Virus record (IMG/VR): IMGVR_UViG_3300036770_007539 | Span: 1-64,000 of that record | DNA length: 64,000 nt | Direction: 5' to 3' (one strand) | Part shown: piece by piece, positions 1-43,421 of the stretch | Position numbering within the stretch: the first letter of the stretch is position 1 | Layout: every line of letters begins with the position of its first letter | The notes under the pieces: model-generated | The model's database searches: none | What the model saw: the letters and a program-made list of their open reading frames with translations, nothing else | What the model was told of the DNA's origin: nothing | Program-made: the position numbers and the translations under genes

Positions 1-5
1 TAAAA

Positions 6-992
6 TTGGAATTGAAGTTTAATATGGCACAAAAGATAATTCATGGAACAGTTTTAGATTATTTACTAGCTCTTAGAAATAAAACAGCTAAGTTTGGTAA
101 AGATGTTTTAGCGCCTTATGATGCCACTAAAATGCTATGTTTTGGCTTTCAATGTCCCGATGGGATACATTTAATTGGTGTAAATACAATTAGATATTAT
201 TATAATATTAGCCACGTATTGCCTGATATTCCAGGCGTAATTTGTATGAAAAATAATTCTTCAAATAGGAACGAAAATGGGGTAGATTCCTTTATTAAAA
301 GCTGTAAAGAAGCTATTGACAATGGTTTGTCAGATAGAATTCAATTATTGAATGAGCTACATTGAAGTTTAAATTAAAAGGAAAAAAATATGAAAGAATA
401 TCTTTTTGTTCTCGTTCCAAGCGAGAGTGGCGGTCATTTTGAAGCTATTTTTGAATCTGAAAAAAGCGTAGAAGCTTTTGATTATTTTCGCGATCAAAAA
501 GATAAAAAGAGATATCCAAGATTATATTTAGGATCTTGGTCAGGGGGAATGTTGCCATTAGCTTCTTCTCTTAAATTAATCGAATCTTGAGGAGCAATAA
601 TTAAAACCATGGAAACATTTCAAGCTACTTGGAATCAAAATTATGCCATTGATCGATTTGATCTTGAGGATAATTGCTACCGCTTAATTGGTTGGATTAC
701 CCGAAATAGAATCGATAACAATCCAGAACCAAGCCAAGTTTACATCATGCGAAACGAATTTGGCTATGTTACTCATTACCGCAACGATGGTCATCCAGAA
801 GCTAAATATATTTGGAGAGTTTGGTGGGCTGAGAGAGATGAAAAAGGATATTACAAAGGCGAAAGCTCTTCCGATGAAATTCAATATCTAACCATGGAAG
901 AAGCTAAACAAGCCTTGGAAAAAAGATTTCTCCCTCCAGAAGCTAAAGTTAAAACAGTTTCAGATCCAAGAAACTTTACCAATTACTCTTGA
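6..992 (+). other. Three hypothetical phage ORFs (6-365, 390-590, 609-992)
   Basis: Co-oriented, closely spaced ORFs with SD-like AAGGA/GAGGAG upstream, ending at a terminator; no recognisable motifs. Confidence 0.7.
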
Positions 993-995
993 AAT

Positions 996-1023
996 AAAAC
1001 CGGCAACCTAAATTGCCGGTTTT
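996..1023. terminator. Bidirectional intrinsic terminator
   Basis: AAAACCGGCAA-cctaaa-TTGCCGGTTTT perfect 11-bp stem with A/T tracts, between convergent genes. Confidence 0.85.
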
Positions 1024-1045
1024 CGTTTTAACATTTAGCTCTCTC

Positions 1046-2443
1046 TCATCCAGGACTTAATTGAATGGAATATGTTACCGTCACAATTCCATTCTCAGGC
1101 TGAGGGAATGATAACCCCCTAAATGCCCCCACAATACAATTAACAACTCCAGCATCAGGCAAATCCGAACCGCCATTTCCTGATTGTGCTACTGAGCCAT
1201 CTCTACCAATTACAAATCGAACAGCTACTCTGCCAGCTAAGCTTGGATTAGTTCTTAGTCCAGCCTCATAACATGCGCGATATCGTCCGAAATTTTGTCT
1301 AATAGTGCGCCTGATTATTTCCGGGGGAATTCTTCCAGATGCCACCGTCTCTCCTTGCCTCATCACGATTGACTTAGGTACATGCTTTCCAGGCAAAGGT
1401 CTGCTACTACTAAAACCCTGAAACATATTGTTACCTAGTCCGCCAATATTATTTCCTACTCCAATTCCTTCCCCTGGTCCTCCGCTACCTTCTCCAATTC
1501 CAGACAGCCCTAAACCATTACTTCCGAACCCTTCTCCAATTTCGGGAGCCCACATATTGCCATTGGCACTGGACAAATCATTTCCTAAAGAATCATCCCG
1601 TCCCCAAGGTGCCGTTGGAGAATTAGGATCTCCGCCCGCACCAGAACTAATTAATCCTATCATCCCGAATTCCATGGCATCTCTTAAAGCATTTTGTCTA
1701 GCTATATGAGGATCGAGATTATTTTGCGGACCTGCAACTCCATATCTTTTATTTGCAGTTGAGGAGTAATTACCCATTGTTCCTTCGCTACCTTTGGATT
1801 TAGCTCCTTGTTCTCCTCCAGAAATGGTTGGACTATTTTCCGTTAAAGTGTTTTCTTCTTGTTTGGTTTCTTTTTCTGCTGCGGCAGCTAAGTATTGTCG
1901 CAATAAAAATCTTTGCTCCATTGACATTTCCCCATCTTCAGAAGCACTTAAAGCGGGCATATAAAAGAAAAATGCTGCTAAAAAAAACAAGTGCATCATT
2001 AAAGATAATCCAAAAAAGCCAACAGATTCTTTATTGAGTTTTAATTTGCTTCCGATAACTTTGCCTGAATTTTGTACGAAAACCACAAAAGAAAATTCTA
2101 AAATTTTAATTTCGGTCGATTCGCCCAAAGATAGTTGAACAGGCTCTTGACTTGGTGGTTGGACGGTGATATGTTGTGAGCTTGGAGAAACTAGCTCTAG
2201 CTGCTCCAACCCTAACTGACTGGTTGGAAAATAATAATCACAGCCAAGATTTTCTCCTATAGTAAAAGATTTGTTAGAATTGATTTGAGCTAGATGAATT
2301 AAATTTTTACCCCAAAAGATCTTAACTTGGTAGGATGTGGAGTTAAGATTATCCGTTTCTTCTGGGGGAATGTCAGGAATAGCCTGAACAAAGCTGTAGT
2401 TAAATTCATCATTCTTAGAAACCGAAACATTATTTTGATTCAT
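1046..2443 (-). CDS. AgmX/PglI C-terminal (TonB_C-like) domain membrane protein, GltG-like, myxobacterial type
   Basis: N-terminal beta-rich (FHA-like) region, one TM helix (FFGLSLMMHLFFLAAFFFYM), Gly-rich linker, C-terminal IRRTIRQNFGRYRACYEAGLRTNPSLAGRVAVRFVIGRDG...FPQPENGIVTVTYSI; SD AGGAG. Confidence 0.85.
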   Translation of the reverse strand: MNQNNVSVSKNDEFNYSFVQAIPDIPPEETDNLNSTSYQVKIFWGKNLIHLAQINSNKSFTIGENLGCDYYFPTSQLGLEQLELVSPSSQHITVQPPSQEPVQLSLGESTEIKILEFSFVVFVQNSGKVIGSKLKLNKESVGFFGLSLMMHLFFLAAFFFYMPALSASEDGEMSMEQRFLLRQYLAAAAEKETKQEENTLTENSPTISGGEQGAKSKGSEGTMGNYSSTANKRYGVAGPQNNLDPHIARQNALRDAMEFGMIGLISSGAGGDPNSPTAPWGRDDSLGNDLSSANGNMWAPEIGEGFGSNGLGLSGIGEGSGGPGEGIGVGNNIGGLGNNMFQGFSSSRPLPGKHVPKSIVMRQGETVASGRIPPEIIRRTIRQNFGRYRACYEAGLRTNPSLAGRVAVRFVIGRDGSVAQSGNGGSDLPDAGVVNCIVGAFRGLSFPQPENGIVTVTYSIQLSPG

Positions 2444-2475
2444 TATTTATCTCCTAAGGGTTAAGGGATAAATGG

Positions 2476-2503
2476 ATAGAAACCCGCCGTTTCAAATAGT
2501 TCC
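2476..2503 (-). promoter_or_regulatory. Candidate ECF (sigmaE-type) promoter for the GltG-like gene
   Basis: Minus strand reads GGAACTa-N16-TCTAT, matching the GGAACTT-N16-TCnAA ECF consensus and spacing. Confidence 0.5.
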
Positions 2504-2528
2504 AAAAAAAATAATATTTTTTTGAGGC

Positions 2529-2557
2529 TTGACGGGAACGGTGGGGTGAGCTATGTT
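2529..2557 (+). promoter_or_regulatory. Sigma70-type early promoter
   Basis: TTGACG-N17-TATGTT followed by SD GAGGA and ATG at 2575. Confidence 0.75.
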
Positions 2558-2574
2558 AGGAGGGCGAGGATATT

Positions 2575-5500
2575 ATGGAAACGAAGCATCAATATCAAGT
2601 TGGAATGATTATTCGACCGGCTGACGGTAGCAATTATCGAGGGGAGATTGTTTATGTTTCCAAGGATGAGGATGTAATTCGTCATCGTTGCTTGAAGACT
2701 GGAAAAATTTACGAGAAAAGTTATTTTGGATTTTTCTGTCGATATTGCACTCTGGAAGAATATGATGAGGCTGAAAAGCGAATCAAAGAAGAGAATGACG
2801 GCTATGACTCTCTATCAGGATAAGCAACAAATGGAAACTTGGACTGATTTAGATGATCAGCCTCTTCCAATTAACAAATTAGTAACTCCATTTCTTTCAG
2901 AGGAAATTCAGGAAAAATATCCTTATCCCTGGAAGAATGGAGAGCCCGTTCTTTATTTGGGAGAAGTTGTTGGCATGAAAGGTCATGGAATTTTTGTTGG
3001 CAATGATGGATTAGTTCGATTCGGATATCATTTAGATTCTTTTAAAATCATTCCAGAAGAAGAGCTATGAGTCTAGAAATAAAAGATAAGTTTTTTGATT
3101 ATCTTACTAAAGATGGTTTCTTTGAAGAAGGAAATATTAAAGATTTTATTTTCTTTGCTTACGAAGATACCATTGGTATATTATACAGCAATCCAGCTTT
3201 AAGTTCAGCCCATAATTGCAACCAATGTCAAGATGAAATTTTGGCATTTGCTCTAAGGGGTCCGTCCAAAGATATTCCTCGTTATTTCTCTGTGGGAGTC
3301 GAGGCATCAATCTTTGCTAAGATTAAGTCTGGATGGCGAGACTCTAAAGGATTTAATTTAAAAAAGGTAATATGGCTTTGAAACATGAAACAATTAAAGA
3401 TTTAATAGAAACTGTTCATTCTAAAGTTTTAGAATTAGGCGTTGGTAATTGCAAAGTTATTTCAACGGATAATCCTTATACTTTGCAAGTAGGATTTACA
3501 ATAGCAAGTGATGCAGAGACAGAGGAACATAGCATCAAGCTTACTAAATTAAAACTTGAACCGCTTTGGCATAAACATTTTGACACTCCGATTAATCGTG
3601 GTAAGCTAGCCGAAGTTTTAGAATCTGGAACCATGCCAACCTGTTAAAAGTTTTTAACAATGATCAAATCTCAATCCGAAGAAAATATGCTAGTTAAAAT
3701 TGTTGAAGAAAACGTTGAGTTAAAATCAAAAGTCTCTTCTTTAGAAAAAGAAAACGAACAATTACGGGCTGCTTTGCTTTGGTACGTTGAAAACGACGAG
3801 ACTAATGAAACCGCTTATAACGAGCCTTGGTTAAAAGGTAAGCGAAAAGCAATGAAGCTACTTGGAATTTCAGAAGATGACGAGTAAAGATATTCAAATT
3901 TTAAAAAGCTGGCAACCATTTAAAATTATTCCAGCCAAGCAATTGGAGCCAAGTTTAGCTCCCGATCTTTATTATGTAGTGGCAGAGGCTCCAACTTTTG
4001 ATTCTTATATTGCTTTTGAGGGATATTTGAATCAATGTGAGCTAGCATGTTCTGCTTTAAATAACAGAGTTTCAACTTCGCTTGCTTATCATGTTCAAAA
4101 AAGTTTAACAGAAAGATTATCATGAGCGTATTAAACGGACCTTCCGAGGGAACTTGGTCAGTTATGGCTGGGAAATGGCTTGAAGAACGGGACCAAGCTA
4201 AGCAAGAATTATATGAAGCAAAGCTAGAAATTGATCGATTGAAATCTGTTATTAAAAATCTAGAAGATTCTTTGGCAGTTAGTTCAGGAAAGAATTATTG
4301 AAAATGGAAAACGAATGGACAACTTACGAATGTCGAGGCTGCGGTCGGCATGAAGAAGCTCATTATAGTTCATTGCCTTGCGATTGGTCACGAATCGAAA
4401 GAATTGATGGACCAAACGGCATTTGTCCTGCTTGCGTTCATGACTTACTAGATGATGTTCTTAATCGACTTCGTGAAGATGGTTATGAAAACGCACATGT
4501 TGTACAAGTCTCAGGCTCAAAGTGATAGGATAGAACCATGGAAACCAAGAAGAGTACTTACAAGGTATATATCGGAGACACCATTTCGGGCTCATCCGAT
4601 ATGCGGTACTATAAGACTCTGGCTGCGGCAGAGCGGAGATTTAACGATCTCAGCCGGAGTTTCCGCAGGAACGGTCATAACAACGTAATTATGGCTGAGA
4701 ACAACACGGTCATCCGATTCTCCTAAGTGCAAACTTCAGGTTCAAAGTGATAGTGTAGAATTATGGAAAACGAATGGATTACCAGCGAAACCGGAACCCG
4801 AACTTTCCGCCATGAGGGCTGGGAGCTAACGGTTTTTGCACATTGTTCTCATCAGATTGATATTTCTGCGCCAAATTCAGATGTAGAAATAGATGTAACG
4901 TCAGAAGGTATTAGTTGTTTTGGTGAGGAGTCAAGCTTCTACTCCTTTTCCGGAGTTCGGTTCACTATTCCTTGGAGAATTATTGAAGAAATTTTAAAAT
5001 TTAAGGCAAGCCAAAATGACGCCCGATGACATTGTAGATTTGAAATGTCGAATCAAAGAACTTGAAGAATTAAATAAAATAGAGAAAATTATGAATCGTT
5101 ACATTCTTAAAAAAGAAATTGTTAATCGTAATGGAATTGTTGTAACAACTTATTTTTGGAATGACGGCAGTAGAAGCGTTGATTCTTCTTGTCATTGTTT
5201 TGGAATTTCGTTTAGAACTCATTCAAATGATAACTGCCTTAATCGAAAATGACCTCCTCTAAAAAACTTTCAACCAGATCCGATGGCGAACGAGAAAGAG
5301 CCAAGCATATCATTTCTCGTTTACGAGGCTGTATTGATGGATTAGAAATAGGTTTGAGAGATTACTCTGCTCCTATCGGGCTTGAAGCGGGAGAAGCAAT
5401 CACTCAAACATCTATTGAACTAGATGCTTATATGCGAGCCGAACAAGATCAAAAGCAATTGCTAAAAATTAAACAAGCCTCAAAAGATTTTATAGAAGTT

Positions 5501-5581
5501 TACGAAAGAATTAGCGATGATAATAATTGGGGATCTTTAGGAGACGTTGAAGATCAATTGAAAGAAGAATTGATAAAATAA
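2575..5581 (+). other. Cluster of about 12 small hypothetical early ORFs, including a 59-aa ORF at 4122-4301 missing from the track
   Basis: Abutting or ATGA-overlapping ORFs of 59-114 aa; 4122-4301 translates MSVLNGPSEGTWSVMAGKWLEERDQAKQ... Confidence 0.7.
4502..4770 (+). repeat. Duplicated ~40-bp promoter/start cassette (4502-4545 and 4727-4770)
   Basis: GTACAAgtcTCAGGcTCAAAGTGATAGgaTAGAAccATGGAAA vs GTGCAAactTCAGGtTCAAAGTGATAGtgTAGAAttATGGAAA; extended -10 (TGnTAGgaT / TGnTAGtgT) lies 6 nt before ATG. Confidence 0.75.
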
Positions 5582-5606
5582 ACCATCAATTATCTGACAT
5601 AATTGC

Positions 5607-6368
5607 ATGTCATATATATATAGACTTGTCGCAGGACCAGATCCTATTAATGTTTCAGCAAGATTGCCTGCCGGATTTTCGTATACTGGCTTTTGGAGCA
5701 CCTCAAAAACCGAAACTGAAAATTTAATAAATGCACATTTGGAGTTTGTAAGTGATTATATGGGTGGCGGCGCATACCCGTGGTCTGATGAACTTACAGT
5801 TCTTACTACGGACTTATCAAATGTAGAAACGGTTGATGAATACGAAAAATATCGTACTGGACCATATCAGCCTGATTTTGATTCTTCTGAAATTTTTGTA
5901 ATAAAAATTAAGGATCTATCTAAAATTACAAAAGAGCCTTGGGATTTTTGGAAGTACGGTAGGAAATTTTATTTTCATCGAGATGATGATCCACAGACCG
6001 AAGCTAGATTAAAAACATATGAAAAAATAAAAGAACTTTCTTTAAAAGAAGATCTTTCTGAAAACGATATCAATTCACTGAACTTGTCCCTAAGAGAACT
6101 AAGGGCGCTCGAACAACAAAATCTGGATCTTGCAGTTGCTCATCCAGATAAGAATCAAAAAGAAAAATCTTTATATGTGGCAGAAGATAATAAGGAGAAC
6201 AATGATAGGCTTGAGCAGCTAATTAACAGATTAATACAAAATAAAAACAATATCTCAAAAGCTTTTTTGCATGAAAAATTTCAAAAAACGTTATCAGCTG
6301 AAGATATTGAAAAAAAAGCAATTTATTTTTATTTTCTTTGCAAAACGTCCTTCTTAAAAAGATCATGA
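5607..6368 (+). CDS. Hypothetical protein, leaderless-type start, C-terminal helix motif
   Basis: 253-aa ORF; AATTATCTGACAT-N6-ATG with no SD; ends IEKKAIYFYFLCKTS. Confidence 0.7.
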   Translation: MSYIYRLVAGPDPINVSARLPAGFSYTGFWSTSKTETENLINAHLEFVSDYMGGGAYPWSDELTVLTTDLSNVETVDEYEKYRTGPYQPDFDSSEIFVIKIKDLSKITKEPWDFWKYGRKFYFHRDDDPQTEARLKTYEKIKELSLKEDLSENDINSLNLSLRELRALEQQNLDLAVAHPDKNQKEKSLYVAEDNKENNDRLEQLINRLIQNKNNISKAFLHEKFQKTLSAEDIEKKAIYFYFLCKTSFLKRS

Positions 6369-6909
6369 AATTAAATATTGAAGAATTATCCCGTGATAAA
6401 AACAAATCATTAAGCTCTCAGCCAATAATTAAATCCGGCTCCAACAAAGGCTTTAGACAGATTGAGAAAAATGGAAACTGGATCTATTTAGATGGCTATG
6501 ATTACCATTGCCGTCAACAAGAAAAATCCATTCATTTTAATTACGTTAAAACATTAATTAATTTAGGCTTCCGAATCGGATCTTGTGATTTGGATGGCGT
6601 AAAATCTTTTTATATTTTCAAAAGTAAGGAAACAAATCCATGAGCGATAACGAAAAATATTGGCAAGAACGTCGAGCCGATTTACAATTCTGCCTAGATA
6701 ATAATCTAGTTTTTAAAATTACTCATCAAGACTTAGAACAAGAGAACATCTTTCTCAAAGAAGAAAGGCAAAGATTAATTAAAAAATTAGAAGAAATAGA
6801 AAATCTCTCTAAATATGCCTGGGAACAAGTGGATCGCAACCCAGAAGAAGCAAAAGAACTATTTAAAATGATTTTTACAAAAAGCAAATGAACCCAGGAG
6901 AAAATATAC

Positions 6910-7509
6910 ATGACTTGCATTGCCGCATTAGTTGAAAACAATACAGTTTATATGGGAGGCGATTCTGCTGGAATTGCCGGATTATCTATTACCGTTCGCT
7001 CTGATGAAAAAGTTTTTATTAATGGTCCATTTATCATTGGAATTACTGGATCGTTCAGAATGTCCGATCTCCTGAGGTATAAACTCGACCCACCAAAACA
7101 AACCGTTCATCGAGATGATCGAGCTTATCTTGTTACCGATTTTGTTGATAGTCTGAGAAAATGTTTCTCTGCCAATGGTTTTGGAGATAAAGATGCTACC
7201 GTTGGAGGGACTTTCCTCCTAGGATATAAAGGAACACTGTATTCCGTTCAAAAGGATTATCAAATTGGAATTCCCAGCACCCAATATGATGCCGCTGGTT
7301 GCGGAGCAGATTTAGCTCTAGGTTCTCTTCATTCTACAGCTAAACTTAATCTTAAGCCAGAACAGCGCATTACTATGGCTTTAGAAGCTGCTAGTACCTT
7401 TAGCGCAGGAGTTTCTCCGCCATTCTTGGTTATGAAACAAGAATATAAAGATCCGGAAGCACCAAAGAAAAAATCACAGCCTGCCGCCCCAAAGAAAAAG
7501 AAAAAATAA
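6910..7509 (+). CDS. HslV/proteasome beta-type N-terminal threonine protease, paralog 1, Lys-rich tail
   Basis: M-T(1)CIAA...GGDS...DEK(33)VF...GITGS...AGCGA; tail APKKKSQPAAPKKKKK. Confidence 0.8.
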   Translation: MTCIAALVENNTVYMGGDSAGIAGLSITVRSDEKVFINGPFIIGITGSFRMSDLLRYKLDPPKQTVHRDDRAYLVTDFVDSLRKCFSANGFGDKDATVGGTFLLGYKGTLYSVQKDYQIGIPSTQYDAAGCGADLALGSLHSTAKLNLKPEQRITMALEAASTFSAGVSPPFLVMKQEYKDPEAPKKKSQPAAPKKKKK

Positions 7510-7601
7510 ATAATTAACATAACCGCCAATATACATTGCAATTATTTTGCATATACTTACGGCGCAAGAGGTAAGTCAACAGCAAACCCAAAAGGAGCTT
7601 C

Positions 7602-8273
7602 ATGACTGCTATCTCCGGAGTATCGATAAATAACACAGTGTATATCGGCGGTGATTCCGCTGGAATTTCTGGTCTTTCTGTAACAATTCGATCTGATGAA
7701 AAGGTCTTTACAGTTGGACCATTTTTATTTGGAATCGCTGGCAGCTTTAGAATGGGAAACATTCTTCGTTACAAATTCAAAGCTCCCAAACAAAAACCAA
7801 ATCAAACCGATATGGCTTATTTGGTAACTGACTTCGTAGATTGTTTACGTGCATATTTTGCAGCCAATGGATTTGGAGACAAAGATGCTACCATTGGAGG
7901 AAACTTTTTGCTTGGGTACAAAGGCAATCTTTATAACATTGATGCTGATTTTCAAGTAGGAATTCCCAGCACTCAATACGATGCCATTGGTTGCGGAGCA
8001 GAATTAGCATTGGGATCTTTGCATACCACTTCGCAATTTGATATTACCCCAGAGGAAAGACTTCGTTTATCATTGGATGCGGCAAGCAAATTCAATGCAG
8101 GCGTAGCTCCTCCATTTGTTATTCTTTCTCAAAAATACGATCCTAAAAAAGAAAAACTAGAAGCTAAAGCAAAAGCCAAGGCAAAAAGCAAAGAACCCAA
8201 AGCCAAAGCAAAATCCAAAGCTAAAATTGAAGTAACAATGGAAAAACAAGCTTCGGCAAAAAAGAAAAAATAA
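7602..8273 (+). CDS. HslV/proteasome beta-type threonine protease, paralog 2, Lys/Ala-rich tail
   Basis: M-T(1)AISG...GGDS...DEKVF...GIAGS...IGCGA; highly similar to the preceding ORF; tail KAKAKAKAKSKEPKAKAKSKAK...AKKKK. Confidence 0.8.
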   Translation: MTAISGVSINNTVYIGGDSAGISGLSVTIRSDEKVFTVGPFLFGIAGSFRMGNILRYKFKAPKQKPNQTDMAYLVTDFVDCLRAYFAANGFGDKDATIGGNFLLGYKGNLYNIDADFQVGIPSTQYDAIGCGAELALGSLHTTSQFDITPEERLRLSLDAASKFNAGVAPPFVILSQKYDPKKEKLEAKAKAKAKSKEPKAKAKSKAKIEVTMEKQASAKKKK

Positions 8274-8296
8274 TTCGTTCTTAATTAAAAAGATTC

Positions 8297-8331
8297 AGCC
8301 CCTTGACAGGATTTGTTCGAGGGGCTATTCT
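8297..8331 (+). promoter_or_regulatory. Sigma70 promoter overlapping a terminator-like hairpin
   Basis: TTGACA(8303)-N17-TATTCT inside the AGCCCCT...AGGGGCT inverted repeat. Confidence 0.75.
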
Positions 8332-8547
8332 CTTTGTGGCGGCAGAGGATTGTGCTGCAAGGAGTTAAAAAATGACCTACGAAGATCATCAGAAATTTAA
8401 ATGGCTTTCTATTTATGGGGCATATGTCGCAGTTCAATGCCATCAAAGAATGATAGATGGTCATGGCGGCGATTTGTCAGATGTTATTGAAAGCATTAAA
8501 GCAGATGCAGAAGCTGTTGCCGATTGGGCACTTGAAGGAGAAGCAAA

Positions 8548-8997
8548 ATGACTTGGGTAATTAAAGAAACTTATTCCGATTCTAAAAAGAAAATTTCCAT
8601 TTACTGTTGCAATGTCCATTGTACCAAATGGAGCACGAGTCAATCGGAAGCCTTTAAATTCAAAGGTAAAGATTCTGCTTATAAAGCTTTGAATCGTTTA
8701 AAGAGTCTTGGTTCCAATGCAAAATTGGTTCGCCTCAAGCCAAAGCAAGAATTAGTTCATCCTGAGAATGGTACGGTGTTTCTGGACTTGACAATGCCAA
8801 CTCCAGAACCTAATATCGTGGTGTGCGTCTATGAGGAGCTTGGTGAAGATTTTGGAGAAGAAGCAGGAGATAATGTTTATTATGTCTGTACGGTAAACTC
8901 CATGTCTACCAAAAGCGAAGATATTTTCTGCGAGCTTTCCGAGTATCATCAATTTTTGCGAGAAGGCAAGATTCAAGTAATCTGGGAACCGACATGA
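8548..8997 (+). CDS. Hypothetical protein, MTW-family member 1
   Basis: MTWVIK...SQSEAFKF...; shares N- and C-terminal domains with 8994-9452. Confidence 0.7.
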   Translation: MTWVIKETYSDSKKKISIYCCNVHCTKWSTSQSEAFKFKGKDSAYKALNRLKSLGSNAKLVRLKPKQELVHPENGTVFLDLTMPTPEPNIVVCVYEELGEDFGEEAGDNVYYVCTVNSMSTKSEDIFCELSEYHQFLREGKIQVIWEPT

Positions 8998-9452
8998 CTT
9001 GGATATTAAAAAATAAAAACGGCTATTATTACAAATCAGGAATGGATATTATTCCTTTGAATTTTACCAATGTTAAATCTTCTGCATCACAAAAAGAAGC
9101 ATGTCGTTTCGAGCAAAAAACAAATGCCGAACTGACAAAAAATTGTCTTAATGCCAGCTTTGTTAAAGCAAACGCTGAGGAATACAAAGTTATCAAACTT
9201 AAATCGCCCGAAGATAGCGAGTCTTTGTTGCCGCAAGTAGATACTGTATTTTACGATGATGTTTTTGGAATTCCGCACCTTGTATGTAAGGTTAACAAAG
9301 ATCCTAAAAACTCTTCTGAGTATGAAATTTGGACGGCATGTTCTGCTAACAAAAATTATTATTGGGGCAGTGATAAAGATTGGCGCACCTTTTTAAATAA
9401 AGGCAGAATTAAAATTTTGTGGGAGCGGGATCAAAATGACTTGGATTGTTAA
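8994..9452 (+). CDS. Hypothetical protein, MTW-family member 2
   Basis: MTWILK...SQKEACRF...; ATGA overlap with the previous gene. Confidence 0.7.
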   Translation: MTWILKNKNGYYYKSGMDIIPLNFTNVKSSASQKEACRFEQKTNAELTKNCLNASFVKANAEEYKVIKLKSPEDSESLLPQVDTVFYDDVFGIPHLVCKVNKDPKNSSEYEIWTACSANKNYYWGSDKDWRTFLNKGRIKILWERDQNDLDC

Positions 9453-10137
9453 ATTAAGCGATGGAAGATATTACGTTAGGAAATATCTTGAAGCTCCGGG
9501 ATCTGTTCCTGAAATTAGCTTTACTTACCATCAAGCCGAGGCTTTCAAATTTCCTAGCGCAATAGATGCTCATTCTACTAAAGAATGGCTTGAATCTACT
9601 CATTCAAAAGCTGAAGTTATTAAATTTTCGGATAAAATTATGAACAAAAAAGAATTAAATCGAAAAGCTGCAATTGCCGTAATTAGTGACCTCATTGAAA
9701 AGATTTCTCTCTCATATAGAGATCAAGTCTCTCAAGCATTAGATGTTTTGGGAGCCACTACAGACGAAAGAGTTTCCGTTTTAGGCAAGCTAGATAGCGC
9801 AGTTGAAGGCGCTCACAAATTATTTAGGCGAACAACACATGTTGATTCTCAAACTCTTTTAGCGAAAATTGATAGCTGTCTTTTTGAGGATGACTGGGAC
9901 TTTGATAGCGTGATCATTAATCACGATGATTTCATTGAGTTGTTTGTAAAAAATCTTGACAAAGTTCGTAGCAGGTATAATGAAAACTCATCAGATGATG
10001 AGGTTCTAAAGCATCTAGAACCGATGAAAACTGGTCGTGGCGGAACCTTGAGGAATCGTCATGGAAATGTCAGTAAAACAATTTATTGGAGCTACGAAAT
10101 AGATCGTGGCGAAGTTCTTGGCTGTAAGAAATTTTGA
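9436..10137 (+). CDS. Hypothetical protein, MTW-family member 3 (different C-terminal domain)
   Basis: MTWIVK...HQAEAFKF...; unrelated C-terminal ~165 aa. Confidence 0.7.
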   Translation: MTWIVKLSDGRYYVRKYLEAPGSVPEISFTYHQAEAFKFPSAIDAHSTKEWLESTHSKAEVIKFSDKIMNKKELNRKAAIAVISDLIEKISLSYRDQVSQALDVLGATTDERVSVLGKLDSAVEGAHKLFRRTTHVDSQTLLAKIDSCLFEDDWDFDSVIINHDDFIELFVKNLDKVRSRYNENSSDDEVLKHLEPMKTGRGGTLRNRHGNVSKTIYWSYEIDRGEVLGCKKF

Positions 10138-10140
10138 ATC

Positions 10141-13100
10141 ATGAAGCAAAAACATATCTATATGTGGTTTGATGGCGATGTTAAGCGTCACTACTTTTCC
10201 AGCAAGCTAACTTATAACAAATGGTTAAGGGAGTTTGTTTCTGAATTAATGAGCGATCCAACATTTCCATCTTTCTACGGGAATCTAAAAAACAAATCAA
10301 GGAAAGATGTGATGAGTTATTTTTCTTCAAATCTTTACCTAGAAAAAATTAAATTAGATCAATGACCACCAGCACAAGGCAAGAAAATCATGAAAATCTC
10401 TACAGAAATTAATAAGATTAAAAAGCGAATCAAATCAAGAATTGACGATCATGTTAATTATTTAATGATTGGAATTGAATTCGTTAAAGAATCTAAAGAA
10501 TGGCATGTTACCCCTTGCTTTGAAGGGGGAGGGGATGGTCATACATCATATATCGCTTTGGATGACCCCGGAATTCTGAACCCCGGACCATTTCAAGGAG
10601 TTGGCGAAACGCTACCAAAAGCTATTGCTAATATTAAAAAAGCACTGGATAACGCTGAGCAAAAAGATTATTGTTTTTACCGTTGGTGATTAACCATGAG
10701 TTATTCCTGCAAAAATAGAGGTCCCCGCAGTTACGAATGGATTTGCCTCTGCCCCGACAAAGGCAAATCAGCTAAAGAAACCATTCCAAATCTTTGGAAT
10801 AGTTATGTTCAAAATTTAATCATCTCCCTTCAAAAGAAAGTCGATTCTCTAACCGAGGAACAAGCATTGAAAGAATTGACAAAAATAGAAGACGAAGCAA
10901 ATCTTCGATTCCAACTATGGAGAGATTCATGTTAAAAAGTAAATATGACGCAGAAATTAATGCCAGAGAACGACTTCAGCTTTGGAATTGGATTAACGAA
11001 TATGTTGTGGCTTGCGGAGGAGATCCTTCAGACGCTACAGTTAGCAATCGTCGAATGGAAGCAGTTTCTAGAATTGAAGGAACGATTTTTGAAATCGCCA
11101 ATCGTCATTACAAGGCTTGCCGATCATGATTCCTGGTAATAATAATTGGCTTGCTTCGCCAGGAAATTATAATCAATTAGATGCTATAGTTGGTCGCATG
11201 GTGCAAGATTTGTTTAAATTTGAAAGGCAGCCCTTTACATTTAAAACAAAGATGGCTATGCAAGCTATAGTTGACCGAGCCATATCAGATGCTCGTCAAT
11301 ATGGAATTGACCCTTCTCAAATAATGGAAGTAGCAAACAGAATTACAGTAATAGAAAGATAGTAGAATGATTAAAAACCGTTGCATGTTTGGTAATGGCT
11401 CTTGCCCTAAAGAACAAGAATGGCATTGTCATGTTTGGTTAAAAGATTGGTCAAGCGGCGACAGATCGCTTTGCGAAGAACATGCTGATAGCTATATGAA
11501 AGCCAATATTCGAGCAGGTCATGGAACTTTTGCAGTAAAGGTAAAAAAATGAGCATTGATTCTGAACTACAGCTAATTAAAGAACTATTCGATATTGAAT
11601 TTGGAGTTACCGTCAAAGGGGATGAAATCAAAGGCTATAATAATGGTAAAATCTATCTTGATTCTACCAATTGCATTGAACTATCTGAGGCTTTTCTCAA
11701 GATTTCTAATTTCTTAAAAAGCTCTCATCCTAATTACGATCCAGTAAAAGCTCAAAAGGATGATATGGAACGACTGTTTCCAAATCCAAAAGAGCTAGAA
11801 AGCCTCCTTGCTCCATTTATTCAAGAAAGCGATTATATCAGCGATCCTGCTCATGCGGAGCCCGTTTTTAATTATACAACTTGCATTAAACGAGTAGTTG
11901 CATCTCTCTTAAAACAACAAGAACTAAATCAAGAAATTGCTTGTGGTCATTCTAAAGGCGACCTTTGGACAGAACTTCACGCAAATGCCAAACCATATTG
12001 CACAATCTGTAGGCTCTACGAAGAAATTGAAGGAAATGCAGCTGCCGCAGTAAAATGGAGAGAAATTGTAGAATCAGCTTTAGGAATAGAGCCAGATCCA
12101 GAAAATCACACCCCAGAATGGGCGCATGAAGTTATTTTAAACATTAGGGAAATTGGAAACAAGAAATGAATAATCACGCCGGTTGGAGTCAAGATGGTCG
12201 CTGTGTTTGGTGCTTTTCCAATGATGCATCATCTCCTTGCATTGATCCTACTTCCGATGAGTTTAGAATGAAGGTTATTAATCTAGAGCAAGCCTTGAAA
12301 CAAGCTCAAGATGAATGTAAGTGGTGGCAGAAAAAACATTGGGAAGATGGTCTGACCATGCGTTATATCGGACGCAGAGAAGGTGCCCATGAAATGCAAA
12401 GGAAGATCCGAGATTTAGTTTGGGCGGCTCGGTTTGATGAATTTCTAGATTCTGAAATTGGTGCTATAGAATACAAAGAAGAACATGCAGTGAATTGCAA
12501 ATGGTGGCGAGATTGGCATGATTGCAGTTGCGGAGCTTTTGACAAACAACAAAAGGACTCTGAGAAAATTCAAACCGGATTTGACAAATATCTTGAAGAA
12601 CAACTTGAAGACCCAGAATTTGCAAAAGAATATCAAAAAGCCAAATTGAAAATAAGCCATGAGTGAACATTCTAAATTAGTTAACTCTCCAGAATGGCAA
12701 GAGATGCAAGAAAATGCTGACAAAGCTCAAAAAGCATTTGAAGCAGAATGTGATCGAGCCTGGAACTCTTTAGATCAAGAAACCAAGCTAAAACTATTCT
12801 GTGCTGTTTGTACTCGCCTTTATAAAGGAGAGCTAGAGGACAAGGGTAGTTATCGCCATGTTTTGTATGAGGTCTTTGGATTTGGTCCAGAGGCTTATGG
12901 AACTGCTCAAGCCGCAGGATTTCTGGCGCTTCACAATGCTATTATTGACGAAGATCAAGAACTGGCTACTGCTAAAAAACTAGCAGAGCTTGCCAAAGAA
13001 TATAATATTCCAAAAGAACAACTAGAAGGCTTGCTTGGCTGGAATCTTGTCAATCTTTATCTTTAACTATGACCCAATTTAAAAATATAAATATTTCTTG

Positions 13101-13749
13101 CATTGAAAATCTTATTTCCGAAGAGATAAATATCTCTTACGGAAATATTTCTATTGAATCTTCTGATGGACATTGGGTAATAGAATATGAATCATATTTT
13201 AACCCCCATGCCAAGCCTTACTCTTTAAAAGATAAAAAAGTTTTTGATAATGCATTAGATGCTGCTAAATTTTTCTGTTCTTATATTCAAGAACGTAACC
13301 AGGATTAGATTATGAATTTTAAACAAAACCAACTATCATCTCAAGAAGCGACCGATGGCGAAATTTACAACAGGGGTCGTTCAGAAGGTCATGCTGATAT
13401 TGCAGCTAAACTCAGAGCCATTCTTGATCCCGAAGATCAGCAGCATCTAAATCTTGATGGTATTTTAAAAGAAATCGAATGGCTGGTTAAATATAAAGAA
13501 CAAGCCGCAGAAGTTATTACTTATATCCGAGAAGCCGATGCCTTAAAAGAATTTGCTTATTCTAATGATGATGGTCCTTCTATTGCCGAACTACTGAGGG
13601 AATGTTATTATTTAGGCAAGGGATATAAGAATAACTTATCACTTAGCGATAGAAATGAGAATAGACAACAAAAATTAAAACAACTTGGCTTCGAGGATTT
13701 GACCGAAGACCAAAAAGCTAATATTCAACTTGGTCGCAACTTAACATAA
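10141..13749 (+). other. Cluster of small hypothetical ORFs
   Basis: About 11 abutting co-oriented ORFs; includes a HicB-like motif (10390-10689), an antitoxin-like C-terminal peptide (12166-12666) and a paralog of 15244-15576 (12659-13066). Confidence 0.7.
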
Positions 13750-13767
13750 TGCCTTAAGAGATTTAAA

Positions 13768-14649
13768 ATGAACCACGAAGAAAACGCATACTTAGACTTA
13801 TTGAAAAATATCCTAGATAATGGGACAACCAAACAAGACCGCACTGGAGTTGGTACGATTGGAATTTTTGGCTCCCAGTTAAAATTCTCATTGGAAAATA
13901 ATACTCTTCCCTTACTTACCACTAAGAAAATGTTTCTACGTGGAATTGTGGAAGAGCTATTGTTTTTTATTCGTGGCGAAACGGACACTAAAAAACTAGA
14001 AGCGAAAGGCGTTAATATCTGGAAAGGTAATACCAGTCGAGACTTTCTTGACAAGCGGGGTCTTGGATATTTGCCCGAAGGTGATATGGGTAAAGGATAT
14101 GGCTTTCAATGGCGCAATTTTGGCGGAACAGCCAAGTCTTATGATTATAAGAATCATCCCAGAGATGGTGTAGATCAGTTGTCTAGAGCATTGGAAATGA
14201 TTAGAAACGAACCGAATAGTAGGAGAATTATAGTATCGGCTTGGAATCCAGTACAGTTAGATGAAATGGCTTTGCCTCCCTGTCATTGGAACTTTCAAAT
14301 GCAGGTAGAAAATGGAAAATTGAATTTAATGTGGGTACAAAGAAGCTGGGATATTTTTCTTGCTGGCGGATTCAATATTTGCAGCTATGCAATTTTGACT
14401 ATGCTTTTAGCTAAAGCTGCTAATTTGCAACCAGGAAATCTTATTTGTTCAGTAGGCGATACTCACGTTTACCTCAACCATATTGATCAGGTAAAAGAGC
14501 AAATCACAAGAACTCCCTATCCATTTCCACAGCTATCAATAGATAAGCCAATCAATTCAATTGAAGACATGGAAAATCTTTCGTATGAAGATTTTGAACT
14601 TCACAATTATCAATGTCACCCAGCAATTAAAGCAGAAATGGCGGTTTAA
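13768..14649 (+). CDS. thyA: Thymidylate synthase
   Basis: DRTGVGT, PLLTTKK, EELLFF, YGFQWR, SRRIIVSAWNP, LPPCH, QRS.D, FN, GDTHVY motifs. Confidence 0.95.
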   Translation: MNHEENAYLDLLKNILDNGTTKQDRTGVGTIGIFGSQLKFSLENNTLPLLTTKKMFLRGIVEELLFFIRGETDTKKLEAKGVNIWKGNTSRDFLDKRGLGYLPEGDMGKGYGFQWRNFGGTAKSYDYKNHPRDGVDQLSRALEMIRNEPNSRRIIVSAWNPVQLDEMALPPCHWNFQMQVENGKLNLMWVQRSWDIFLAGGFNICSYAILTMLLAKAANLQPGNLICSVGDTHVYLNHIDQVKEQITRTPYPFPQLSIDKPINSIEDMENLSYEDFELHNYQCHPAIKAEMAV

Positions 14650-14651
14650 TT

Positions 14652-15257
14652 ATGAAACATCCACATATCGCATTTAACGATTGCAAAGTAAATAATATTT
14701 ATATCCTTCATTCTAGGAATTTAAAATTCGGAGTTTTTACTTCATCTGGAACTTTTATCGGCTTACGCACCAAGTTTGATAACGTTTTTCTTGACAAAGA
14801 ATTGCATATTGAACGAGGCGGAACAGCTACTCCAATGTATCGTTTTGGCAGCATACCTGATAACATTCCATTAGTTACTTCACTAGGCACTTATGATGAA
14901 ATGACTGGTAAAATAGTAGAATTTGATAAACCCATTGTGGATGGTGGTAAGGGCTGGTATTTTGCAGATACTGGGGCTTCATCTACTGAAATTAAACCAT
15001 ACAACAAAAACAATACTGCATTATTTGATTATTTAAAGAACCTTGAATTAACGGTTGAAATGATTGAGCAATATTCTAGTTTAACTAATTGGAAGAATGA
15101 TAATCTTGGTTTTGTTCCGGGCACTCTTAGCCCTGTAAGATTGATTGACTTGCCTGATAATCCAACAATTGTAATTGACGAAGAATCTTCCAAAGCAAGA
15201 AAAGCTGCCATTATTGAATGGATGACACGAGGAAACATGGATCATGGAAACAAATAG
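14652..15257 (+). CDS. Hypothetical protein
   Basis: 201-aa ORF in operon with thyA. Confidence 0.65.
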   Translation: MKHPHIAFNDCKVNNIYILHSRNLKFGVFTSSGTFIGLRTKFDNVFLDKELHIERGGTATPMYRFGSIPDNIPLVTSLGTYDEMTGKIVEFDKPIVDGGKGWYFADTGASSTEIKPYNKNNTALFDYLKNLELTVEMIEQYSSLTNWKNDNLGFVPGTLSPVRLIDLPDNPTIVIDEESSKARKAAIIEWMTRGNMDHGNK

Positions 15258-15576
15258 CAATTTAGAGATTGAAAAGAAATCTGAAGAAACTTGGAATTCT
15301 TTAACCCAAGAACAGCAGTTAGATGTTTTTTGCGCTGTTGCTCGAAGGTTATATCAAGGGGAGATAGTCGATAAAGGATCTTTCAGATATATTTTGTATG
15401 ATGTTTTTAAATTTGGTCCCGAAGCCTACACGCCAGCTTATGACGCTGGTTATATGATGATTCATAATGCTATTTGCGATCAACAAGATTATGATGATTT
15501 AATTATTAAAGTTAAAAAGTTTGCTGAAGAAAATAATCTTGACCAGAAAATCATAGAAAGTTATTTTAAATTTTAA
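15244..15576 (+). CDS. Hypothetical protein, paralog of 12659-13066
   Basis: WNSL.QE..L..FCAV..RLY.GE..DKGS.R..LY.VF.FGPEAY..A..AG....HNAI shared. Confidence 0.8.
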   Translation: METNSNLEIEKKSEETWNSLTQEQQLDVFCAVARRLYQGEIVDKGSFRYILYDVFKFGPEAYTPAYDAGYMMIHNAICDQQDYDDLIIKVKKFAEENNLDQKIIESYFKF

Positions 15577-15579
15577 AAA

Positions 15580-16563: not shown

Positions 16564-16607
16564 GCGATTATGTAAAAATATTAGCATCAATATAGAAAGC
16601 AACAATA

Positions 16608-16994
16608 ATGATCAAGTCAAATCAAATAGAAATTAGCTCAAAAGAATTAACCATAGAAGAATTAAAAAAAAGATTAGCCTGGACAGAGGAATGGTACGCC
16701 GTTCGCTTTCAGCATTTCAGAAAGTTATGCGAAGATCATAATCTTTTAACAGAGTTTTGCAATATTGCCGCCAATGGGAGAGAAGATATAACTTCCCCTC
16801 CCACATTTCAAAATTTATTAAATCTAGCTAATCTTGAAAAAGAAAAGGCTATTAAAGCAGCTAAACAAACTGCCAAAAACATGGAAGAGATGGAGCGAGA
16901 TCTCTATCTTAAATTGAACGAAAAAGAAAAGGCAATTGAAGATCTAAAAGATCTATTGGTAGAACTATCAGAGAAAATTCAAAGATTTCTTTAA
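16608..16994 (+). CDS. Hypothetical coiled-coil protein
   Basis: Heptad-rich C-terminus. Confidence 0.6.
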   Translation: MIKSNQIEISSKELTIEELKKRLAWTEEWYAVRFQHFRKLCEDHNLLTEFCNIAANGREDITSPPTFQNLLNLANLEKEKAIKAAKQTAKNMEEMERDLYLKLNEKEKAIEDLKDLLVELSEKIQRFL

Positions 16995-17004
16995 ATCTAT
17001 ATTT

Positions 17005-17841: not shown

Positions 17842-17891
17842 AGTTTGCTCCTATCTTAATGCGATATAGTTGATATATTTAAGGAGGTTTT

Positions 17892-19888: not shown

Positions 19889-20084
19889 AATTATGAAAGC
19901 TTCAGTTGGGTTTGATGGCATTTCTTTGTTTACTCTTGAATCAAAGAAAACATTTGTTCATATAGGATTGTTCCATCCTTTTCAAGTTTGGGGTCGAGGA
20001 GAATATTGGCATAATGATTTAGTTTTTGATTTTGGATTGGGTCCATTTTTTAGAATTATTAAATTTGATATTAAGGAGTAGAAT

Positions 20085-30485: not shown

Positions 30486-30507
30486 CTAACTTTCTGCAAT
30501 TAAAGCG

Positions 30508-34882: not shown

Positions 34883-34928
34883 ATGGGGGATGCCTCTAGG
34901 TGGGGCTAGTTGTTTAGAGAGGAAAAAA

Positions 34929-43390: not shown

Positions 43391-43421
43391 GTCAACTAAT
43401 GTTCCTACTAACAGGGGATTT

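Follow-up and report, generated by a model that had tools for sequence, protein, structure and literature searches.

A jumbo-phage gene for a short, FHA-less GltG homologue belonging to the Polyangiaceae GltG lineage

The window, that is, the whole stretch of 64,000 nucleotides that was analysed, carries on its minus strand a gene whose product is an FHA-less homologue of the gliding protein GltG, encoded by a bacteriophage and here called short GltG. An initial annotation, made from the sequence alone, had placed the open reading frame at exactly these limits. The features of the locus and of the encoded protein, whose architecture was derived from an AlphaFold model with fold matches by Foldseek, are as follows:

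996..1023, minus strand: probable intrinsic, possibly bidirectional terminator, a 12-bp stem-loop followed by A-U-U-U (from fold energy)
1046..2443, minus strand: phage short-GltG coding sequence, a complete ORF of 465 aa with an ATG start
2451-2455, minus strand: Shine-Dalgarno sequence AGGAG, 7 nt 5' of the ATG, read off the sequence
2476..2503, minus strand: bipartite promoter-like motif GGAAC (2499-2503)-N17-TTCTAT (2476-2481), preceded by a T run
2342..2443, minus strand: disordered N-terminal tail, aa 1-34 (pLDDT <50)
2066..2341, minus strand: cytoplasmic FHA-like beta-sandwich, aa 35-126 (pLDDT 86-93; Foldseek)
1961..2032, minus strand: transmembrane helix, aa 138-161, N-in/C-out (AlphaFold model; flanking charges)
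2003-2005 and 1991-1993, minus strand: codons of S147 and H151, the S147-x3-H151 motif within the transmembrane helix, with P163 just past the helix
1853..1921, minus strand: first periplasmic helix, aa 175-197 (Q-Y-L-A-A-A-A-E-K-E; AlphaFold model)
1454..1738, minus strand: most conserved periplasmic stretch, aa 236-330, with an invariant T-A-P-W-G-R-D motif
1337..1453, minus strand: Gly-rich variable linker, aa 331-369 (pLDDT <50; 41% identity to cellular GltG)
1049..1336, minus strand: TonB-CTD-like AgmX/PglI C-terminal domain, aa 370-465 (profile and fold match)

The gene has a GC content of 40.6% and a GC3 of 0.28, against 54-74% GC in Polyangiaceae loci and a GC3 of about 0.95 in the paralog of Sorangium cellulosum So ce56. 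On a contig which overlaps and extends the window (L005), it is the sole ORF on its own strand amid more than 10 kb of ORFs on the opposite strand. The AT-rich codons and the stand-alone reverse cassette described in the initial annotation were thus both confirmed, and the terminator that it had also proposed can be upheld as probable. The hairpin at 996-1023, which separates the convergent genes 609-992 (+) and 1046-2443 (-), has a fold energy of -17.4 kcal/mol (z -3.27), unmatched in 200 shuffles; it is kept in L150, and in L002 the homologue is followed by a separate, GC-rich hairpin and a T run. A stricter scan for consensus terminators did not call it.

The claim that the cassette has its own promoter held only in part, since sigma-70-like sites occur at chance level (6 found versus 6.8 expected in the promoter scan) and what is conserved instead is the bipartite element GGAAC-N17-TTCTAT. 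The GGAAC and T-TCT columns are invariant upstream of the homologous gene at 7 phage loci, from at least three divergent lineages. Only 2 copies of the motif are present in the 374 kb of the phage, with about 1.9 expected, so that it is not a general phage promoter. Reading of the motif by the phage's own sigma factors was also considered and is unlikely, the sigma factor in the window being RpoH/RpoS-like and the motif occurring only twice in the genome. In its design, the motif resembles the ECF (sigma-E-type) promoters.

As regards the protein, the transmembrane segment, Gly-rich linker and TonB_C-like domain recognised in the initial annotation were confirmed by AlphaFold, Foldseek and the NCBIfam model NF033768, while the cytoplasmic FHA-like domain and the absence of an N-terminal FHA domain had been missed. 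The disordered tail includes a Y-x-F/L-V..P-D/E-V-P..E motif, which in the alignments precedes the central domain of cellular GltG. The domain that follows matches the FHA domains 2lc1, 3po8 and Rad53 (Foldseek probability 0.98-1.0) and is homologous to the central, membrane-proximal FHA domain of GltG in a degenerate form: it is about 35 aa shorter in the phage than in cells according to the alignment, and shows G-E where the canonical phosphopeptide-binding G-R would be expected. Its identity to cellular GltG is 25%, yet its dN/dS is 0.14-0.17. The transmembrane helix (38% identity to cellular GltG) is flanked by a K-rich N side and an acidic C side; its S-x3-H motif is shared by all 15 phage-clade sequences and by the majority of cellular GltGs, the His being absent from some of the latter and hence not universal.

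On the periplasmic side, Q183, L185 and E190 of the first helix are invariant. The stretch of aa 236-330, disordered if modelled alone, is 76% identical to cellular GltG, with an 82% consensus match, and is homologous to the GltG segment threaded into a crevice of GltD in a published model (PMC11761067). The C-terminal alpha/beta domain (aa 374-462, pLDDT about 90, 72% identity to cellular GltG) is matched by NF033768, the AgmX/PglI C-terminal domain, with 77.4 bits over a cut-off of 40 (81.3 bits in the genome scan), and in fold by the C-terminal domains of TonB, FusB and TolA (best Foldseek E 5.6e-4). No meaningful Pfam match was obtained for the protein, and the Pfam models TonB_C (PF03544) and TonB_2 gave zero matches at E <= 1; its resemblance to TonB is therefore one of fold only.

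The GltG model NF033760 matches the phage protein with an E value of 6.3e-41 over profile positions 332-642 of 650. The score of 140.7 bits misses the equivalog cut-off of 650 bits, but the GltG proteins of the glt clusters of Sorangium and Chondromyces miss it too (320 and 302 bits), which indicates that the cut-off is tuned to closer relatives of Myxococcus xanthus. The nearest cellular relatives are the GltG proteins of Polyangiaceae, with 41-49% identity over 97% of the length and E values around 1e-132; aa 186-680 of Sorangium GltG, for instance, align to aa 14-465 of the query at 45% identity. All 80 best loci among the GTDB species genomes belong to Polyangiaceae or unclassified myxobacteria. 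The matched GltG orthologues, from Sorangium, Polyangium, Chondromyces and Minicystis, are encoded in gltD-E-F-G-H-I clusters, downstream of gltD, gltE and gltF. The possibility that the best matches would be generic TonB proteins of non-gliding taxa, raised with the first assignment as a GltG/AgmX/PglI-like homologue, was not borne out, these being GltG orthologues of gliding Polyangiaceae in glt clusters. The assignment itself stands with a correction: the protein is not a full GltG, as it lacks about 35 aa of the central domain and the N-terminal FHA domain (PF00498), for which neither the Pfam nor the NCBIfam FHA models found a match. Nor does the phage gene have the cluster setting of its cellular counterparts: it is a lone one, with no GltD, E, F, H or I homologue in 374 kb.

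In a maximum-likelihood (ML) tree rooted on more distant Myxococcota homologues, about 15 short, AT-rich phage-clade genes form a single clade (support 100/99), placed within a group (95/96) with the GltG of Sorangium and Polyangium and, with only moderate support (88/86), sister to the FHA-less cellular paralogs L107-L109. Short GltG is thus a phage-borne member of the Polyangiaceae (Sorangium/Polyangium group) GltG lineage, and the resemblance to Sorangium/Polyangium proteins noted in the initial annotation is supported. When descent from full-length GltG was compared with descent from an FHA-less paralog, the AU test did not exclude full-length GltG (p 0.32), and a single origin of all phage copies, including a variant (L008), was neither shown nor rejected (p-AU 0.16). 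Two other identities were rejected: an NfsG-like one, since NfsG retains its FHA domain (682 aa; PMC2875238), and a GltJ-like one, since the match to the GltJ model is weak (E 0.017, 14 bits). In two independent pairs of phage genes, dN/dS was 0.107 (the window gene versus a 95%-identical relative) and 0.078, with every region below 0.2. Capture of the gene was an ancient event; its codons have since been adapted to the composition of the phage, and purifying selection has maintained it across a clade of jumbo phages.

The truncated form is also found in cells. Polyangiaceae hold many FHA-less GltG paralogs outside their glt clusters, as stand-alone genes, such as those of S. cellulosum So ce56 (L107, 539 aa) and P. 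jinanense (L109); among the best 150 matches, about 120 were GC-type representatives of these short paralogs, with a median length of 504 aa. In two unrelated sources they adjoin a second protein with an AgmX/PglI C-terminal domain and an asparaginase. Like the phage protein, they comprise the central FHA-like domain, the transmembrane helix, the periplasmic segment and the C-terminal domain without the N-terminal FHA; they differ from it in their full-length central domain, their high GC content and the frequent proximity of the second AgmX/PglI-CTD protein. Upstream of them, the element GGAAC-N16/17-[TC]GTC is present in 7 of 11 cases and in one new test case, with a background of 0.019 per 450 nt. 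The phage motif has TTC where the cellular one has GTC; phage gene and cellular paralogs carry a promoter-like element of the same design, GGAAC-N16/17-T(G/T)TC. The phage gene, which starts just before the central domain, stands alone and has a GGAAC-type motif upstream, fits the short-paralog pattern. Since FHA-less paralogs are common in cells, the FHA truncation is no invention of the phage; moreover, as cells keep so many of them, loss of this domain need not amount to a dominant negative, and the short form may have a positive role. The FHA-less paralogs are the probable donors of the phage gene, the choice between them and full-length GltG being unresolved by the AU test. The short GltG paralogs of cells thus emerge as a large family with ECF-type promoter motifs that has not been studied.

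The element that bears the gene is a jumbo tailed phage, with a portal, tail sheath, tail fibres, RIIA and PhoH, and the gene lies within a map of 374,420 bp that closes into a circle. Clade members are present on several phage contigs of 180-374 kb; homologues were also found on other viral contigs, 184-231 kb long, and in phage-like contexts. No MotA/ExbB/TolQ protein, no FHA gene and no other Glt homologue was found anywhere in the phage. A tblastn search against 50,697 isolated phage genomes returned zero homologues, and neither the protein nor any of ten flanking ORFs could be assigned to a PHROGs family. The region of the gene was recovered from independent runs, both freshwater and soil; the sole RNA (metatranscriptome) contig found covers a neighbouring ORF and not the short-GltG gene.

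With respect to the host, the capture of a GltG gene points to Sorangium/Polyangium-type myxobacteria, a possibility that remains unproven. The best isolate match of the portal protein, in Bacillus phage G (34% identity), is uninformative on this point, and a GC-rich 20-kb island of the phage gave only short low-complexity matches against 101 Polyangiaceae genomes. The phage has a GC content of 35% versus 54-74% in Polyangiaceae; phage-host gaps this wide do occur, as with phiKZ on Pseudomonas. No cultured lytic phage for Polyangiaceae is known to us, and the present data provide a concrete Polyangiaceae host hypothesis for phages of 180-374 kb from groundwater, freshwater and soil.

In the Agl-Glt gliding machine, GltG serves as a transducer of the TolA/TonB type, located in the inner membrane and linking the proton-driven motor to the rest of the apparatus. 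Its interaction with AglR has been detected by two-hybrid assay (PMC3169522), and an AlphaFold-based model (PMC11761067) assigns partners to its parts: GltI, at six sites, to the N-terminal FHA domain; AglR5QS to the central FHA domain and the transmembrane helix; GltD to aa 428-543, which wrap it; and GltD and GltF to the C-terminal domain. This partner map is a model of the M. xanthus machine, without experiment save for the AglR two-hybrid. Prediction of a complex between phage aa 240-465, Sorangium GltD (90-790) and GltF gave scores of 0.00, 0.58 and 0.01 (median 0.01), which is no answer either way.

Based on this map, a mechanism can be proposed, the most likely of those considered, which is inferred and has no functional or expression data behind it. 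In an infected Polyangiaceae-like host, short GltG, probably expressed via a host ECF-type sigma factor, would insert N-in into the inner membrane, where its S-x3-H helix and membrane-proximal FHA-like domain would dock on the AglR5QS proton channel of the host; a motor gene is absent from the phage itself. The conserved periplasmic segment and the TonB-CTD-like domain would engage the GltD and GltF proteins of the host, the same contacts that the published model gives to GltG. Motor-transducer units loaded with the phage protein could then not gather into focal adhesions, because the FHA domain which in that model tethers GltG to the GltI scaffold is missing. Competition of the phage protein with host GltG would leave the gliding machine uncoupled or re-routed. 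Gliding would then probably stop and/or the outer-membrane Glt platform change its state, and superinfection could be blocked as well. That short GltG engages the Agl-Glt machine of the host in this manner is as open to doubt as to belief; docking on AglR in particular is not assured, because the cytoplasmic domain and the transmembrane helix have strongly diverged and the central domain has lost its 35 or so residues. The earlier suggestions of altered gliding, envelope energisation or a blocked receptor likewise remain plausible only, functional data being absent.

Several other explanations deserve consideration. The phage might supply a working transducer so that the Agl-powered machine runs on after the shutdown of host expression, infected cells continuing to glide and spread the phage, or the envelope staying energised, while loss of the FHA domain frees the protein from the spatial control of the host. 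Every part required to couple to the motor and to bind GltD/GltF is indeed retained under purifying selection, and phages often carry trimmed host genes which sustain a host process, such as psbA in cyanophages. However, the missing domain is the one that recruits GltG to the GltI scaffold in the published model, which makes productive, directional gliding without it hard to picture, and GltG is one of at least 17 parts, of which the phage has no other; such maintenance or substitution is considered unlikely. A further possibility, also considered rather unlikely, is that the phage protein does the same job as the cellular short paralogs, perhaps not in gliding at all but, for example, in an ECF-sigma-induced, Agl- or Tol-like envelope-stress or transport role, which the phage would exploit to keep the envelope stable or to remodel it while the jumbo phage completes its long infection. 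This is favoured by the sister position of the phage clade to the short paralogs (88/86), by the upstream motif of the same design, and by the paralogs being numerous, diverse and outside glt clusters, with a second AgmX/PglI-CTD protein and an asparaginase as their neighbours in two unrelated sources. Against it, the segments assigned to the GltD/GltF contacts are the best conserved, which argues for the partners of GltG; the AU test leaves descent from full-length GltG open (p 0.32), and the function of the paralogs is itself unknown.

Superinfection exclusion or receptor masking can be put forward only by analogy and is very unlikely. The phage protein would be a decoy transducer locking an outer-membrane Glt part used for adsorption or injection in a form of no use to later phages, or the energy delivered by GltG would be needed for entry. 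Pseudomonas phages do block type IV pili through Tip and Aqs1, excluding rivals, and phages and colicins enter cells by way of TonB and TolA; one of the Foldseek fold matches is the TolA-g3p complex 2x9a. Nevertheless, no receptor is known and direct evidence is lacking, and masking could coexist with uncoupling as its consequence. Finally, the gene could be an artefact, namely cellular DNA placed in a viral contig through an error of assembly or binning, or else a pseudogene in decay, as it lies 1 kb from the record end and region 1-3352 is a separate assembly unit. This can practically be dismissed: the composition is phage-like and not Polyangiaceae-like (GC3 0.28), phage-type ORFs lie on both flanks, the contigs close to a circle, the same region recurs in independent freshwater and soil runs, homologues exist on at least five other large viral contigs, and the ORF is intact with a dN/dS of about 0.1.

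Returning to the uncoupling mechanism, a bolder version of it may be advanced, towards which we lean less than towards the mechanism itself and which is rather more probably wrong than right. According to it, the short GltG of Polyangiaceae would be an undescribed brake or re-router under ECF-sigma control, competing with GltG for AglRQS and GltD/GltF, and jumbo phages would have captured both brake and promoter to immobilise or rewire infected cells. If true, this would be the first phage manipulation of Agl-Glt gliding and the first host link of huge phages to Sorangium/Polyangium-type myxobacteria. No report of a phage-encoded Glt/Agl component was found in the literature searched.

Among known systems, the closest is GltG itself (PglI, MXAN_4867) of M. 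xanthus and its orthologues of about 680 aa in Polyangiaceae, which are homologous to the phage protein from the central FHA-like domain to the C-terminus and have in common with it the S-x3-H transmembrane helix, the T-A-P-W-G-R-D segment and the AgmX/PglI TonB-CTD-like domain. Some 35 aa of the central domain are missing from the phage form, as are the roughly 185 aa that make up the N-terminal FHA domain and a Pro/Ala-rich linker; its gene lies in a phage, away from any glt/agl gene, and is written in AT-rich codons. This natural FHA deletion represents a ready-made separation-of-function allele for the published, unverified model, in which the N-terminal FHA domain ties motors to the GltI scaffold and the remainder couples AglRQS to GltD/GltF. 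NfsG, the sporulation paralog of GltG, and GltJ (AgmX) also possess the AgmX/PglI C-terminal domain and are served by the same AglRQS motor family. For GltJ, ZnR and GYF domains have been reported (PMC11761067), neither of which gave a Pfam match in the phage protein.

With TonB and TolA, which work with ExbBD and TolQR, respectively, the phage protein has in common an N-in single-pass anchor with S-x3-H, a long flexible periplasmic spacer and a C-terminal TonB-CTD fold, and it likely acts as a transducer of this type, a function inferred from architecture and motif. Its spacer, however, is Gly-rich instead of Pro-rich, a cytoplasmic FHA-like domain is added, and AglRQS and GltD/GltF are expected to take the place of ExbBD or TonB-box receptors as its partners. 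Phage factors against surface motility, possibly serving to exclude rivals, are represented by Tip and Aqs1 of Pseudomonas phages, directed against type IV pili; a structural part of the myxobacterial focal-adhesion motor, if carried by a phage, would add gliding to pili and flagella among the host machines that phages take over. Tip and Aqs1 are small inhibitors unrelated to their targets, whereas the phage short GltG is a captured structural component of a machine.

The product of the phage gene under study is very probably a transducer of the GltG lineage, the inner-membrane TolA/TonB-like component of the myxobacterial Agl-Glt gliding machine, in a short form devoid of FHA domain, and the carriage of such a form by a phage is what is new here. 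The gene is real, as the initial annotation had claimed, and is accompanied by the following signals:

1046-2443 of the window, minus strand: phage short-GltG ORF, 465 aa, ATG start, intact
7 nt upstream of the ATG, same strand: Shine-Dalgarno sequence AGGAG
Between this ORF and the convergent ORF 609-992: hairpin with a 12-bp stem, then U-rich sequence (-17.4 kcal/mol, z -3.3)

No other sizeable minus-strand gene lies near the gene, and in L005, a locus of contig G154 which overlaps the window and extends it leftward, it is the sole ORF on its own strand, every other ORF over more than 10 kb lying on the opposite one; the stand-alone reverse cassette that had been proposed has thus held. The terminator and promoter ascribed to it held only in part: the hairpin and U-rich sequence are present, but a stricter consensus scan returned no terminator, while sigma-70-like promoter sites were at chance level only and a GGAAC-type promoter-like element was found instead. 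In a freshwater variant (run X5), 248 nt at window 2554-2803 are replaced by 29 other letters and most of ORF 2575-2823 is gone, so that the left flank of the cassette differs between strains.

Pfam and PHROGs searches of the protein returned nothing. The NCBIfam AgmX/PglI C-terminal domain was recognized at 77.4 bits (cut-off 40), and the NCBIfam GltG equivalog was matched over profile positions 332-642 of 650 (E 6.3e-41), with a score under its 650-bit cut-off. In a search of 5.8 billion proteins, the nearest matches were short proteins (420-491 aa, 50-95% identity), the next tier, which runs into the hundreds, being proteins of about 680 aa from Sorangium and Polyangium, the genera whose resemblance had been noted from sequence alone and is now upheld, and from Chondromyces and Minicystis. 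These cellular proteins contain FHA and AgmX/PglI domains and are 41-49% identical over 97% of the query (E about 1e-132); by BLASTP, query residues 14-465 align to residues 186-680 of an S. cellulosum protein. This protein and its relatives are encoded directly 3' of gltD-, gltE- and gltF-like genes, with a giant gltI-like gene after them (among the Polyangiaceae loci, gltD was upstream in 41 and gltF in 43), and this placement identifies the 680-aa Polyangiaceae proteins as GltG orthologues. Among one-genome-per-species prokaryotes, the best 80 loci all belonged to Polyangiaceae or unclassified myxobacteria (80/80), and across 151 evenly sampled Myxococcota genomes 48-59% identity was reached by a small top tier only. 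A Polyangiaceae-like host is moderately favoured.

In a Polyangiaceae-like MAG (GCA_964269635.1), gene calling divides the gltG of the glt cluster (L003 9402-11476) into two genes that share 4 nt, one for an FHA protein of 200 aa and the other for the remaining 491 aa, which may reflect a natural split or a frameshift.

The element carrying the gene is a jumbo phage. The window is bases 1-64000 of its parent IMG/VR record (G000, 301,007 bp), which encodes RIIA, a helicase, a tail sheath, collagen-like tail fibres, PhoH, ribonucleotide reductase and a portal whose top match among isolated phages is that of Bacillus phage G (34% identity). That the gene could be a contig-end artefact was rejected, since a second IMG/VR contig (G154, 76,892 bp) overlaps both ends of the record with 100% identity, its final bases being record 1-3352 and its start the last 127 bases (G000 300,881-301,007). 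Once joined, they make a circular map that closes at 374,420 bp (35.4% GC; 8 tRNA genes), and the gene is therefore inside the genome and not at its end. Moreover, the gene region was found in independent freshwater and soil runs, with differences that are mostly transitions. No transcript evidence for the gene was obtained. Other features of the phage are:

Window 30581-31378, plus strand: sigma-70-family protein, 265 aa, RpoH/RpoS-like
G000 211,196-211,837, plus strand: divergent sigma-70-family protein, 213 aa
Window 34890-37106, plus strand: RIIA-like protein
Window 43302-44876, plus strand: DNA helicase
Window 58778-60742, plus strand: phrog_13226, a large phage protein, conserved but without known function
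Window 30413-30486, 32372-32460 and 39053-39126: tRNA genes for Gln, Ser and Thr, respectively

Elsewhere in the record, a group I intron (Rfam RF00028, 59.9 bits) lies at about G000 296,138-296,343 (8138-8343 of the stretch L102), near tRNA-Lys and tRNA-Leu genes. Outside the window, at about G000 270,000-290,000 (1000-20000 of the stretch L101), this 35% GC phage has an unexplained 20-kb island of 50-64% GC. The translations of its ORFs are Arg/Pro/Ser-rich, with no Pfam matches and no Rfam family, the single credible ORF being metallophosphoesterase-like (L101 5421-6134), and comparison with 101 Polyangiaceae genomes gave no real DNA match. At the island's edge there is an 11/22-nt tandem array, GATAGAATAGG, in about 24 copies (L101 691-991, G000 about 269,691-269,991).

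An AlphaFold model of the protein, built on an 87-sequence alignment, comprises:

aa 36-125: beta-sandwich, confident
aa 138-161: transmembrane (TM) helix
aa 175-197 and aa 247-258: helices
Reaching aa 369: disordered Gly-rich stretch
aa 374-462: alpha/beta domain, confident

Foldseek related the C-terminal domain to those of TonB, FusB and TolA, and the N-terminal one to FHA domains; the TM, Gly-rich linker and TonB_C-like layout of the initial annotation was thereby confirmed. Two parts of cellular GltG, the N-terminal FHA domain and its Pro/Ala-rich linker, have no counterpart in the phage protein, whose central FHA-like domain is also shorter by about 35 aa. The TM helix bears an S147-x3-H151 motif, present in 15/15 phage-clade sequences and in most cellular GltGs, but not all; the anchors of TonB and TolA have this same spacing. 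Identity between phage and cell is very uneven, being 25% in the FHA-like domain and 38% in the TM helix, as against 76% in the periplasmic segment aa 236-330, with an invariant T-A-P-W-G-R-D inside, and 72% in the C-terminal domain.

The FHA-less short form was not invented by the phage. Polyangiaceae genomes harbour extra GltG paralogs which start just before the central domain, without FHA match (the So ce56 one has 539 aa and that of P. jinanense 581 aa), are located outside the glt clusters and often, as seen in two unrelated sources, have an asparaginase gene and another gene for an AgmX/PglI-CTD protein beside them. As far as could be found, these cellular paralogs are undescribed. A library of 50%-identity representatives yielded 785 proteins at E <= 1e-30, the best 150 of which included about 120 of GC-type (median 504 aa) and 5-6 with phage-like composition. 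Short paralogs, of which the Polyangiaceae loci L107-L109, L140-L149 and L169 are examples, were also seen to be very numerous and diverse in metagenomes.

Of the 16 phage-type sequences placed in a maximum-likelihood tree (59 sequences, 494 columns), 15, all but L008, formed one clade (support 100/99) within a group (95/96) holding Sorangium and Polyangium GltG. One group of short paralogs was sister to the phage clade (88/86); the alternative, derivation of the clade from full-length GltG, was not rejected (p-AU 0.32), and a single origin for 16/16 was neither supported nor rejected (p-AU 0.16). Homologues were found on large viral contigs of 213, 200 and 184 kb, on a 231-kb contig also bearing terminase and PhoH, and on phage-like contigs of 22 and 28 kb, all with further genes in common with this phage and with GC from 32% to 48%. 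The family is under selection, with dN/dS of 0.107 between the window and a 95%-identical relative, 0.078 between the phage loci L006 and L007, and below 0.2 in all regions of the gene, whose GC3 of 0.28 indicates that it has been wholly recoded to phage composition. A second phage form (L008 9803-10960, on the 184-kb IMGVR_UViG_3300037067_011302) adjoins a PhoH-like gene and encodes a 385-aa protein that lacks the S-x3-H motif, begins with an unrelated N-terminus and matches Sorangium GltG aa 363-680 at 70% identity; it may have been acquired separately and more recently.

Upstream of the gene, GGAAC-N17-TTCTA(T/A), preceded by a T run, is shared by three groups of phage loci (the window and L150; L006, L007 and L158; L157) whose proteins share only about 50% identity between groups. 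The phage locus L002 has a variant (N18, TCTTA), and L008 has no GGAAC motif. The two copies in the 374 kb of this phage are chance level, so the motif belongs to the GltG gene specifically and does not serve as a general phage promoter. Furthermore, GGAAC-N16/17-[TC]GTC occurs <=450 nt upstream of 7/11 cellular short paralogs, where the background rate is 0.019 per 450 nt, and a new metagenomic paralog tested later has this motif as well, again with a T run (8/12 in total); the -10-like part is TTC in phage and GTC in cells. The GGAAC-N16/17 design resembles ECF (sigma-E-type) promoters. Since the phage sigma in the window is RpoH/RpoS-like, it is inferred that the motif is likely read by a host ECF sigma factor rather than by a phage one.

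No MotA/ExbB/TolQ-family gene, FHA gene or other Glt homologue was found in the whole phage, and an energised function would therefore need the host motor and partners. It is proposed that the phage protein would take the place of GltG on the AglRQS motor and on GltD/GltF and, without the scaffold-binding FHA, could not be gathered on GltI, the gliding machine being uncoupled or re-routed as a result. This competitive uncoupling is inferred, not shown, and its chances of being right are put at even or slightly less; modelling of a complex with Sorangium GltD and GltF spoke neither for nor against it.

Other explanations remain possible: the protein might maintain the host machine, it might have an envelope role unrelated to gliding and inherited from the cellular short paralogs, or its main selected effect might be the exclusion of other phages. 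A GltG-replacing transducer is the best explanation of the retention pattern, in which the periplasmic contact segments (the best conserved), the S-x3-H anchor and the membrane-proximal domain are kept and the scaffold-binding FHA is absent. Neither a phage-encoded Glt component nor jumbo phages of Polyangiaceae are reported in the literature searched.

Finally, the protein can be compared with GltG as it appears in a model of the M. xanthus machine that rests on AlphaFold (PMC11761067). There, the cytoplasmic scaffold GltI is contacted at six sites by the N-terminal FHA, the central FHA and TM helix dock on AglR5QS, a long disordered linker crosses the periplasm, residues 428-543 occupy a crevice of GltD, and the TonB-CTD sits on the GltD N-terminal domain, with a strand paired with GltF. 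Relative to that GltG, the phage protein retains all contact elements but the GltI-binding FHA.
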